Shown in pieces: positions 7,388 to 13,831 of a stretch of 39,620 nucleotides of DNA (position 1 is its first letter; each line of letters starts with the position of its first letter). The stretch covers positions 1 through 39,620 of the forward strand of contig CALSCP010000390.1 of NCBI GenBank assembly GCA_943704425.1, written 5' to 3'. This stretch comes from Ministeria vibrans ATCC 50519 (Eukaryota > Protista > Filasterea). The notes beneath the pieces were generated by a model. The model ran no database searches. It had not been told where the DNA came from and saw nothing but the letters and a program-made list of their open reading frames with translations. A program made the position numbers and the translations under genes.

Positions 7388-10300
7388 ATGGCAGGTGAGG
7401 CGATCACAAACACCTCGTCAACATATTGACTGAAACCTCTCTCTCTCTCTCTCTCTCTCTCTCTCTCTCTCTCTCTCTCTCTCTCTCTCTCTCTCTCTCT
7501 CTCTCTCTTAACCCTTTCCATTCATCTGTGTCTTCATGTAGGGCGCGAACCACGCACCCTACCAACGCTATGGCAGGCAGTCCGCACCGAGGACGGCAAA
7601 ACCTATTACTTCAACCGGTAATCCATTCCATCGCGCGTCTTCTTTCTTTTTTTTTTTTTTTTTTTNNNNNNNNNNATATTGTGTATTGTGGTCGGATTGT
7701 GTCTTTGTTTGTATTGTGTATTGTGGTCGGATTGTGTTCTTCTCTTCTCGTCGCTATTCTCTTCCTACTGCTTCTTCTCGCTCAGTATTGTCTTCAACGG
7801 ACCACTACAGGCCCCGTGGGCGCCCTCCCGCGCGCCAGGTGCCCGTTTCTGTCCCGCTACGCGTCATCACTTTCCAGTTCACCTTCAGCACGAAACGCAT
7901 CCCGTTCGATCTGAACCCGCTCATCCGCCGTCCCCCGTTGCATTGCCACTGTCCCACCATCAACACCCTATCTCGCCCTGTCCCTCTACGACTCTCTCAC
8001 TCTCTACGATCTTCTCACAAGTCCTTTTTTTACTCTCTCTTACTTCTCTCTCTCTCTCTTTTTTTTGTGCATTTTCTCCTCTTTCTTCCTGCGATTTTTT
8101 TTTTTTTTTTTTTTTTTTTTTTTTTTTGCGGCCGCTTCCGATTCCCCTTGTGCGCCTTCTCACTCGTCGTGTGTCTTCTGGTGTGCAGGGAAACGCGGCA
8201 GACCTCGTGGACCCTTCCCGATGAGCGTGCAGCCGCAGCGCAGGTTGTCGATCCGCGCATTGACCAGACGCTACTGACGCTCAACGCCGTCCTCTACTGT
8301 GCCGACAGCACGACCAAGGCTTGGGCGGCCCTGGCACCCTCACCCGTCGACTTGTCCATCATTGCTGCGCAACACGATACTCCCTTGCCCTACAAGATCC
8401 TCTGCTGTGTCAACAACGTCGTAAGAGCCCCTCCGGTGGCTTTTGCTATTCTTCACACATGATGTCTTTTGTTTTAGAATATTCTCAATCACACCATCAC
8501 CGAGGACACGTCGCTCGTACAAAACGACACGTTCATCCAGTGGCATCCTCTTTCGAACAAATCCAAGCTGTATGGTGCTCGCTTCGGAACCGAACTTGAC
8601 GCAACCACAGTTAGTTTTTCATCACCCTAACCCTCCCTCTCCCTGTCTGACTTTATCTTTTTTTTTTTTTTTTACCTNNNNNNNNNNCGACAAAAGAGTC
8701 TCCAGATTTGAACTTGCCCTTTTTTGAAACAGATATTTGAAAACCGACTTTTTTTTACCTGCTTTAGTTCAATCGATTGATTGCAACTGCTCGCGACGCT
8801 GTCGCCTCGGGACAACCTGCTGCGGTTGAAGTCGAGCAGCGCTTTCAATCGATTACATTGCAGTACACGAGCAATGCACAGCGCAGTCGTCTTACCGACC
8901 TGCAGGAGGGCGCCGACGCCGCTGCCTCCGCTGCGTTTGCACGCTCCAGTCGTGCCGGTCGAAGGGCCAGTGCTGCCTCCAAAGATATGCTTTCTGTCAC
9001 CACCAAGTCACCGCCTTTGGCACGTAGTCTCAGCACTGGCACTCGCTCGTCGCCCACCGGCTCACCCAAGCGTGGTCGCAGAAAGGCCACTGGCTACGAG
9101 GCAAGCTTGGTCTCGGGTAGCATTTCCGAAGAGAGTTCCCCTTCTGTCGCGTCCACCGCCGCCGCCGCCACCACCGTCGTCAATCTCGCTCCCCCTACGA
9201 CAGCGTCAGTCTCGTCCACCACGGCGACGGCTATGTCTTCTTCCTCCTCTGCTGCCAAAGGAGCTCGTCGTGGCTCCGCCAAGTCATCTACATCCACGCC
9301 CTCGTCCAAGAAGAACACCCAAGTCATATTCGTGCATTTGCCGCAGCACAAGAGCACCATTGTGCGCGTGTCACCCTCCATGACCATGGCCGACCTTCAT
9401 GTGTACATTTGTGGCAAGAACCTCCTTGACCCGTCACGCTACATCCTCCAGAATGCCGCCGCTCCCGATGCCAAGCTGGTCATCTCCAGCACCGTTGCCG
9501 AGTCGCTTGTTCGCGAGGTGCGCATCATTGACGTTGGCCAGGCACCCGCCGACCCAGCCCTTGCTGCCATGATTGAACGGCGCATGAGCACCAGTCCGGT
9601 TGCTCCCTGTACGACCTCCCCACGATCTTCTACCTCCGCCGCCGCCGTCACATCGGTGTTATCGCCGACTCACCGAAACCCAGACAAGTCGCAAGATCCT
9701 CCTGCATACAAAGACTCGCGCGAAACCACCGCGACTTCTTCATCGCACAGCAGCAACATTGCAATAGCTGCAGCCGCAGCCGCTGGCTCTCTCAAACCCA
9801 CTGCCGCTCTTTCACAACAACAACAACAACAACAACAACAACAACAAGATTCCGCCTCGCCCTACCGTCCTGGCCACGGTCGTAAACGCTCCGGTTCAAC
9901 GGGTGCACCAAGGTTCCTAACCCTTTCTTTTAGTTGCAATAACCCTTCATTGTTTAACACTCCACTTCTTTTTTTTCTCTCCCTTGCACAGCATTGTCGC
10001 ACCGTCACCTGTCGCTCCTGTTGAAGCAACTGTGCTCACTGTCGCTGACCAAGAGGAGCGACCAGCTGCATCTACGCTCGAGACCAAGGCGCTCAATGTG
10101 ACTGCGAGTGACAAGAAGAAGTCGCACAGTTTCACGTCGTTTCAGCAGCAACAGCCCAAGGTCGCGATGACCTCGAGTGTGTCGGCCGAGGAGCTGTCTA
10201 CCGAAGACATGGTCTCGGGTCTGGTGGATTTGCTTGAGACCAACTCGTTGTCACCCGAGTGGCGCAAGCTTTTTGAGCTCAGTGGCATTACGCGCGAGTC

Positions 10301-13300: not shown

Positions 13301-13831
13301 ACTACGCAAGGTCGACGCGCGTCCCATGTTTGAGAGTGGCAGTAGAGTGGTCTCCACCGCTGATGGTACGTCATCGCCATCGTCGGCCGCGGGACGACCA
13401 GTCGAAGACTCAATGATGTCCATGGCCAACTCACTGAGCCAGGCACTTGCCGAGCGTCGTGCGCGTATTATGATGGCTCACGGTAAGAGAGAAGAGAGAG
13501 AGAGAGAGAGAGAGAGAGAGAGAGAGAGAGAGAGAGAGAGAGAGAGAGAGAGAGAGAGAGAGAGAGAGAGAGAGAGAGAGAGAGAAAGAGAGAGAAAGAG
13601 AGAGAGAAGAGGGGGAAAGAAACAAAGTGTGTGTGTGAGAGAGAGACAGGGAGAGAGAGGAGGGGGAAAGAAACAAAGTGATAGAGAGAGAAAGAAACAA
13701 AGTGAAGAGTGTGTGTATGTGTGTGTTTGTGTGTCGTCAACCTTATTTCGAATTTTGTTTGCTTAGAACACGCTGCGCGTTTTGACAATGAATTGGAGAA
13801 CCAGGACAGTGACGAGGATTGGGACGATTGA
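7388..13831 (+). CDS. Multidomain WASP-family Arp2/3 nucleation-promoting factor (WW, EVH1/WH1, RBD/Cobl-like, GBD helices, PTB, Pro-rich, WH2-C-A), ~1715 aa, 7 exons
   Basis: Exons 7388-7394, 7542-7617, 8189-8420, 8478-8609, 8768-9912, 9992-13482 and 13767-13831; all GT-AG, phases consistent, 5148 nt in total. WW LPTLWQAVRTEDGKTYYFNRETRQTSWTLP; EVH1-like AVLYCADSTTKAW...LNHTITEDT...FIQWH...LYGARFGTELDATTF; GBD NSLSPEWRKLFELSGITRESLRDKDELEFIIGYVRSNGG; PTB YLGSVEV...LNVSCDGIGLVD; WH2 SLMAAITGHGGIARLRKVD; C helix MANSLSQALAERR; acidic tail DSDEDWDD*. Assembly gaps fall inside introns 2 and 4. Confidence 0.88.
13486..13610. repeat. (AG)n intronic microsatellite
   Basis: Long AG run in the last intron of the WASP-like gene. 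It produces the spurious ERERER tail in the ORF track. Confidence 0.95.

Follow-up and report, generated by a model that had tools for sequence, protein, structure and literature searches.

Proteins of the WASP family are the main switches from signals to branched actin, with Rho GTPases, phosphoinositides and SH3 adaptors as the inputs known so far. What kind of protein, then, is encoded by a locus in which a WASP-type C-terminal part shares one chain with a WW domain, a ubiquitin-like domain and a PTB domain? This locus lies at positions 7388-13831, on the + strand, of contig CALSCP010000390.1 from the filasterean Ministeria vibrans ATCC 50519 (assembly GCA_943704425.1). Positions 1-39,620 of this contig (39,620 nucleotides, nt) are the window analysed here. 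A first interpretation drawn from the DNA letters (the sequence-only reading) had described the product as a giant WASP-family protein with new input modules. The locus is one expressed gene encoding a multidomain protein of 1715 residues, and we consider it probable that this protein is a nucleation-promoting factor with the WASP layout minus CRIB and with four recruitment modules besides. The C-terminal two thirds would have kept the WASP succession of GBD helices, proline-rich region, WH2, C helix and acidic tryptophan-bearing tail, while the CRIB, by which Cdc42 or Rac opens WASP, would have been lost. The four modules gained would be an N-terminal WW, an EVH1-like domain nearer to those of Homer and Ena/VASP, a cordon-bleu (Cobl)-type ubiquitin-like domain and, immediately following the GBD, a Numb-like PTB.

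One expressed gene

Read from the sequence, the gene consists of seven exons that add up to 5148 nt, i.e. 1715 codons followed by TGA, and every intron runs from GT to AG. Public runs (n = 4) were compared with positions 7525-13505; X1 and X4 supply spliced, RNA-derived contigs, and X12 is DNA. The spliced contigs of X1 and X4 show GT..AG joints at 7617|8189, 8420|8478 and 9912|9992. They join 7617 to 8189 (X1 record 1 and X4 record 10), spanning the N gap at 7666-7675, and 8609 to 8768, spanning the second N gap at 8678-8687. One contig in each of these two runs carries exons 2, 3, 4 and 5 in succession, and a second RNA contig links exon 5 (from 9857) to exon 6. At 7540 the loose ends of the X1 and X4 contigs read ...GTACAATGGC, which is exon 1 with the final letters ATGGC, and at 13482 those of X1, X4 and X5 continue with AACACGCTGCGCG..., the sequence of exon 7 from 13767 onward. 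The introns are retained in the DNA run X12. Because the spliced contigs span the gaps while this DNA run retains the introns, both N gaps are intronic, the reading frame is unbroken, and the flanks of the gaps belong to one spliced transcript. The exons and RNA contigs match exactly the single spliced product of about 1715 residues that the sequence-only reading had proposed, and its single transcript across both gaps is borne out, with one unspanned repeat in exon 5 that is weighed below.

The 3′ RNA contigs (X1 record 2, X4 record 12) run about 2.3-2.4 kb past the end of exon 6, which far exceeds exon 7 and a short untranslated region. They probably merge with the transcript of a convergent minus-strand gene (~13969-17087), the two genes thus having overlapping 3′ ends. 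A long (CT)n run lies in intron 1 (7437-7510), and a long run of (GA)n in intron 6 (13493-13600). These runs are reverse-complementary and flank exons 2-6, so that they could conceivably pair in the pre-mRNA; no back-splice joint occurs among the contigs compared, a comparison that started at 7525. In intron 4 (8619-8749), the DNA contig X12 record 7 has 47 nt of its own between 8618 and 8749, against 130 nt in the window including the gap, and the 62 nt at 8688-8749 recur within another contig, of 3.4 kb, whose flanks are unrelated. The mismatch is probably a small repeat-driven assembly problem that leaves the coding sequence unaffected. Finally, a short sequence of intron 2 (7676-7737, tgtgtattgtggtcggattgtgt..., a tandem duplicate) reaches a DNA contig depth of 350-700 versus ~160 for the gene, and is therefore a multi-copy genomic element.

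GBD helices and VCA tail

The segment extending from the GBD to the PTB was searched with phmmer (full HMMER search) against 1.84 billion (1.84e9) representative proteins. This gave 15 matches at E<=1e-3, all confined to the GBD stretch ...LSPEWRKLFELSGITRESLRDKDELEFIIGYVRSNGG..., with a best E of 1.2e-10. When ten of the matches were scanned with Pfam, WH1 and/or PBD was present in all ten, both in four, and WH2 as well in two. The GBD also matches that of the canonical WASP of the same genome (BLASTP E 2e-10). A pattern search for CRIB was negative in the WASP-like protein, and the PBD profile aligns at positions 24-49 of 59 only. In the alignment, an acidic segment occupies the place where two WASPs have the CRIB signature I-x-x-P-S-x-F-x-H-x-x-H-I-G. 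As judged by these comparisons, the WASP-type autoinhibitory helices of the GBD are kept and CRIB is absent. A co-fold of the GBD (exon 6 residues 66-135) with the WH2-C segment (residues 1085-1163) scored 0.26, the mark being 0.34, and weighs neither for nor against autoinhibition.

The second-best E of the search belongs to a cluster of environmental sequences (P0002/P0018/P0026, from JGI and Logan; L010) whose GBD is 44% identical. P0002 and P0018 are short (342 residues), and their GBD lacks CRIB like that of M. vibrans, the PBD match being post-CRIB only. They differ in having a clear WASP-type WH1 (42 bits), and no PTB, WW, ubiquitin-like domain or VCA is present in the pieces at hand. 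Loss of CRIB with retention of the GBD helices thus occurs in other, uncultured eukaryotes.

Downstream of the PTB, a motif scan of the proline-rich region finds the SH3-type motifs KVPPPVP and RKLPPVP, together with LPPPP (twice), LPLPP (three times), LPVPP (once) and PPPPP (twice); one PPAY lies upstream of this region, in exon 5. The WH2 is colinear in alignment with that of the canonical WASP P0010. The C helix MANSLSQALAER aligns with the C region of P0010 (MANALAKALADR) at z 6.1, a score reached by 0 of 3000 shuffles, and in local alignment with the own-genome WASP at z 3.9. The tail DSDEDWDD sits at the extreme C-terminus and aligns with ...DDDEDWED of P0010 (z 2.8). Proline-rich region, WH2, C and acidic tail follow one another in the order and at the spacing of a WASP VCA. 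The WH2 (LRKV), C helix and DEDWDD named by the sequence-only reading are therefore all in place and colinear, the WH2 with a score under its Pfam cut-off. The K[RK]xAP (KRAP) motif of the Cobl homology region was sought in the protein by motif scan and is absent. In WASP, the C helix is the partner of the GBD, and actin and Arp2/3 are bound by the VCA; by analogy, the VCA tail described here would be expected to activate Arp2/3.

WW, ubiquitin-like, PTB and EVH1-like domains

Domain searches were made exon by exon, and both the WW and the EVH1 are split by introns. Exon 2 alone (24 residues) matches the WW profile PF00397 over positions 1-20 of 31 (E 9.9e-6) with 25.9 bits, to be read against a cut-off of 26.9 that applies to a whole WW domain. 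The remainder, RETRQTSWTLP, opens exon 3 and contributes the second Trp and the conserved Pro within SWTLP. The two halves are joined in frame by the RNA contigs, in agreement with the split N-terminal WW anticipated from the sequence.

The ubiquitin-like domain matches Cobl (PF09469) with 23.3 bits in hmmscan, and with 26.5 bits in a six-frame scan of the organism's own genome (cut-off 25), where it is the sole Cobl match in 29.7 Mb. A search of 177,635 PDB sequences yields a single match below E 1, namely 2daj ("KIAA0977 protein"), aligned over 81 residues at E 1.5e-4; we take 2daj to be the ubiquitin-like domain of COBLL1. Within the limits of a borderline Pfam score, the domain is of the cordon-bleu type. 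A Raf-RBD identity was considered and rejected: PF02196 covers 45 residues with 19.5 bits, short of its cut-off of 25.7, and is outscored there by Cobl. The "ubiquitin-like RBD" that had been placed at ~9316-9535 thus survives as a ubiquitin-like domain (9305-9538) and not as a Raf-type RBD. Since it scores as Cobl and the Raf-RBD falls under its cut-off, binding to Ras-family GTPases is without support, and the proposed recruitment to them was dropped. An AlphaFold model of the domain made without an alignment (pLDDT 44) is too poor for use.

The PTB is recovered well above threshold (PF00640, 30.9 bits against a cut-off of 20.9, E 3.2e-7), at 10656-11057, where the sequence-only reading had seen it at ~10670-11055. 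Its best PDB sequence matches are Numb-like (3f0w, E 1.5e-5) and Numb (E 9.7e-5). Secondary support comes from an AlphaFold model made without an alignment, of low confidence (pLDDT 52), which yields 68 Foldseek matches at E<=1e-3; all the matches listed are PTB domains (Numb, X11, GULP1, Dab1), with TM scores of 0.51-0.68. An Atlas search with the GBD-PTB segment returned PTB families only (ICAP-1, EPS8, Dab2; ~0.8), to be taken as a lead only. On comparison of both sequence and fold the domain is Numb-like, of the Numb/Dab class. PTB domains of this class bind NPxY/F tails without phosphotyrosine, as well as phosphoinositides, and by analogy binding of NPxY/F tails is plausible here. WW, ubiquitin-like domain and PTB are, as had been pointed out, absent from canonical WASPs.

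The EVH1-like domain is of another kind. Searched one at a time, exons 3, 4 and 5 give no match to Pfam WH1. A six-frame genome scan with PF00568 finds four other genes, likewise intron-split yet detected piecewise, and not the gene at 7388-13831. A PDB sequence search with single exons of the region returned nothing, and a search of the protein libraries for EVH1 seed sequences gave two short matches only. Exon 4, on the other hand, resembles the C half of two EVH1 domains of the same genome, both verified as Pfam WH1: that of L004, Homer-like by eye (BLASTP E 6e-5, shuffle z 5.9), and that of the Ena/VASP-like L001 (BLASTP E 0.002, shuffle z 5.1). Against WASP-type WH1 its shuffle z is ~0. 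A hidden Markov model built from five WASP WH1 sequences gave no signal either, and it has little power, having missed two Pfam-verified EVH1 pieces. For exon 3, hhalign against an Ena/VASP N-half alignment gives a weak E of 0.12, in register at the conserved Trp; an Atlas search returned noise, and no Pfam or PDB match was obtained for this half. The border between exons 3 and 4 corresponds to the junction of N and C pieces in other EVH1 genes, near profile position 61/62. Each of the Homer-like and Ena/VASP-like EVH1 genes L004 (G000:C437:28561-31692), L001 (C1228) and L002 (C1888) has an intron near that position.

The stretch from within exon 3 to the start of exon 5 would accordingly be a divergent EVH1-fold domain, half supported and closer to the Homer and Ena/VASP class. 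Because its detectable half resembles Homer and Ena/VASP EVH1 and not WASP WH1, it cannot serve to assign the protein to the WASP lineage, and the link to WASP therefore rests on GBD and VCA. The earlier argument that EVH1 and GBD together identify the lineage holds for the GBD and fails for the EVH1. The profile searches by which that interpretation was to be checked likewise recovered WW, PID and Cobl, left WH2 below its cut-off, and gave no WH1 (PF00568) from any single exon. All features are collected in Table 1.

Table 1. Features of the WASP-like gene, in coordinates of the window
Feature	Position	Strand	Remarks
Exon 1	7388..7394	+	ATG GCA G; first ATG of the transcript contig; 5′ untranslated region of at least ~85 nt
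Exon 2	7542..7617	+	First two thirds of WW (LPTLWQAVRTEDGKTYYFN, from 7559)
N gap 1	7666..7675	.	Within intron 2 (7618-8188)
Exon 3	8189..8420	+	End of WW (to ~8219), linker, putative EVH1-like N half (~8262-8420)
Exon 4	8478..8609	+	EVH1-like C half, ..DTFIQW..LYGARFGTELDA..
N gap 2	8678..8687	.	Within intron 4 (8610-8767)
Exon 5	8768..9912	+	Putative EVH1 C-terminal helix (8768-8815), Ser/Ala/Thr-rich linker, Cobl-type ubiquitin-like domain, PPAY (9698-9709), poly-Q (CAA)
Cordon-bleu-type ubiquitin-like domain	9305..9538	+	PF09469; match to PDB 2daj
Exon 6	9992..13482	+	GBD helices, PTB, long proline-rich/acidic region, WH2, C helix
WASP-type GBD autoinhibitory helices, NSLSPEWRKLFELSGITRESLRDKDELEFIIGYVRSNGGLS	10242..10364	+	phmmer, BLASTP; no upstream CRIB
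PTB/PID, Numb/Dab class	10656..11057	+	PF00640, PDB, Foldseek
Proline-rich region with two acidic islands	11150..13220	+	Motif scan, composition
WH2, single, HGSLMAAITGHGGIARLRKV	13254..13313	+	LRKV at 13302; PF02205; alignment
Central/connector (C) helix, MANSLSQALAERRARIMMAH	13410..13482	+	Local alignment to two WASPs
Exon 7, acidic tail ...NQDSDEDWDD and stop	13767..13831	+	Loose ends of RNA contigs; DEDWDD at 13811-13828

The upstream neighbour, at 4237-7206 on the + strand, is a single open frame of 989 residues with a Pkinase domain (221 bits) between long tracts rich in His, Gln, Pro and Ser-Arg; it is CDK12/13-like by eye. Fewer than 100 nt separate the end of its frame from the 5′ end of the transcript contig of the WASP-like gene.

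Relatives, rival explanations and possible role

The genome also encodes a canonical WASP, on contig C2642 (L003, G000:C2642:5831-8832, + strand). It comprises WH1 pieces, a basic stretch, a full CRIB (IGKPSDFRHIGHIGFNPETGF), GBD helices, poly-proline, a WH2 (24.2 bits) and a C helix, and the contig ends at 8832, ahead of any acidic tail. Since the canonical WASP sits there, the gene studied here is a second, paralogue-like WASP-type gene and not the WASP orthologue. No close paralogue of its GBD-PTB or WH2-C (VCA) segments exists elsewhere in the genome. Metagenome contigs hold no relatives of the GBD-PTB segment, and no homologue of the whole of exon 6 or of its residues 60-350 was found in protein libraries from which this genome seems to be missing and in which protists are sparsely represented.

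Compared with WASP and N-WASP, the protein has the same domain order, from an N-terminal EVH1-fold candidate through GBD helices (E 1e-10 to 1e-4 to WASP-type proteins) and a proline-rich region to a single WH2, a C helix and an acidic Trp tail. It is, however, three times as long, lacks CRIB, carries an EVH1-like domain that resembles WASP WH1 in no test, and has the additional WW, Cobl-type ubiquitin-like domain and PTB, all this beside a canonical WASP in the same genome. Because CRIB is absent and a WASP-type WH1 unsupported, it falls outside the definition of the WASP/N-WASP subfamily; its GBD and VCA suggest a WASP-family-like activator. Fungal Las17/Wsp1 and other CRIB-less WASPs are free of Cdc42/CRIB control, driven by proline motifs and SH3 domains, and found at endocytic sites. 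The M. vibrans protein is similar in being a candidate activator of WASP-family type without CRIB, but it has GBD helices, WW, ubiquitin-like domain and PTB, none of which, to our knowledge, occurs in Las17, whose WH1 is a true one. With adaptors such as Numb, Numb-like, Dab and ARH, which connect cargo to clathrin and AP-2 and have no VCA, it shares a PTB of the same class, its best fold matches being Numb, X11, GULP1 and Dab; unlike theirs, this PTB stands within a VCA-bearing chain. With COBLL1 and Cordon-bleu it shares the type of ubiquitin-like domain and, as in Cobl-like (PMC5748978), a single WH2 near the C-terminus, but KRAP motifs are missing, GBD, C and acidic elements foreign to Cobl proteins are present, and the WH2 has a CA extension.

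The combination of a WASP-type GBD and VCA with WW, a Cobl-type ubiquitin-like domain and a Numb-like PTB was found nowhere else. A full-text literature search for it returned no such protein. PTB, WW and ubiquitin-like domains go unmentioned in a 2012 survey of WASP-family proteins (PMC3298513), and the paper on the filopodia toolkit of unicellular holozoans mentions neither PTB nor Cobl and describes no such WASP architecture (PMC3748353).

Several observations weigh against a WASP-like nucleation-promoting factor made as one chain, and the rival explanations start from them. The CAA (poly-Q) repeat at 9805-9857 in exon 5 is the sole site without a spanning transcript contig, and in the RNA contigs the 3′ part (9805-13482, GBD-PTB-VCA) is 1.8 to 3.6 times deeper than the 5′ part (7540-9805, WW-EVH1-ubiquitin-like), at 92.3 versus 25.7 and 171 versus 94. 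Could there be two transcription units, yielding a WW-EVH1-ubiquitin-like product and a GBD-PTB-VCA product that merely share an open frame across the poly-Q? We give this very little credence. The DNA contigs end at the same repeat, pointing to an artefact of k-mer assemblers, which break contigs at such repeats; RNA contigs enter it by ~36-37 nt from either side; the frame stays open throughout, and the splice from exon 5 to exon 6 lies only 55 nt downstream. The depth imbalance could reflect 3′ bias or an extra, shorter 3′ isoform, which is possible but not indicated. A further weakness concerns the WH2, whose PF02205 score of 15.2 bits (E 0.017) is below the cut-off of 23.1, whose linker is three residues longer than usual, and which is not among the six best WH2 matches of the genome. 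The VCA might then have decayed, leaving a scaffold or endocytic adaptor with weak or no G-actin binding and no activation of Arp2/3. This is improbable, as the parts in contact with Arp2/3, namely C helix and acidic Trp tail, are the best-conserved pieces, and the tail is retained on a terminal exon of its own that is spliced in RNA.

That the protein is a mosaic produced by exon or domain shuffling appears unlikely too, if less so than the preceding explanations. A WASP cassette of GBD, proline-rich region and VCA would have been grafted onto an unrelated adaptor made of WW, Homer-like EVH1, Cobl-type ubiquitin-like domain and PTB; "WASP lineage" would then cover part of the chain, and the main role may be that of a Cobl-like or adaptor-type actin regulator. 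In its favour, the detectable EVH1 half is like the Homer/Ena/VASP-type domains of the same genome and unlike WASP WH1, and a Cobl-type ubiquitin-like domain with a single C-terminal WH2 recalls Cobl-like (PMC5748978). Yet the order EVH1, GBD, proline-rich region, VCA is exactly that of WASP, the protein has no KRAP motifs like those of the Cobl homology region, and grafting is indistinguishable from loss and divergence in the absence of orthologues or a tree. The N half of the EVH1-like domain also counts against the WASP-like interpretation, exon 3 being not significant (z 1.8; BLASTP E 0.63 against the Homer-like N half). The same is true of the lack of an orthologue among the 1.84 billion representative proteins or the metagenome contigs, a weakly informative result that leaves the proposed new WASP subfamily with no member in another species. 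Conservation and purifying selection thus find no orthologues to draw on, this being one gene in one genome. Autoinhibition, the ligands of the PTB and activation of Arp2/3 are, moreover, all expectations drawn from known WASP and Numb/Dab-class proteins.

Under the favoured interpretation of a single-chain, WASP-like nucleation-promoting factor, the GBD helices would keep the C helix autoinhibited as in WASP, and the VCA tail would bind G-actin and Arp2/3. Release and placement would depend on the PTB engaging NPxY/F tails or phosphoinositides instead of on a Rho GTPase, on WW and EVH1 binding proline motifs, and on SH3 proteins docking to the proline-rich region. Membrane receptors or endocytic cargo would in this way be coupled directly to branched-actin assembly, and GTPase input would be left to the ordinary CRIB-bearing WASP of the same genome. 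The internal PPAY and LPPPP motifs allow one to speculate on intramolecular or oligomeric contacts with WW and EVH1. A bolder version, which we regard as doubtful, sees an Arp2/3 activator driven by receptor tails and independent of GTPases: a WASP paralogue without CRIB, opened and positioned by its own Numb-like PTB (on NPxY/F tails, e.g. of integrin beta or endocytic cargo) together with WW and EVH1, and bearing, next to a single WH2, the most ancient cordon-bleu-type ubiquitin-like domain known.

A natural chain with a Numb-class PTB beside autoinhibitory helices would offer a direct test case for the GTPase-free triggering of Arp2/3 by receptor tails, in a lineage that serves to reconstruct the origins of animal adhesion and endocytosis. 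Cobl-like is said to have arisen with Bilateria (PMC5748978), a date that a Cobl-type ubiquitin-like domain and WH2 in a protist would precede. If true, the origin of the Cobl-like module would shift from Bilateria to unicellular holozoans and be tied to the WASP family, which would alter the history of the Cobl nucleator family.

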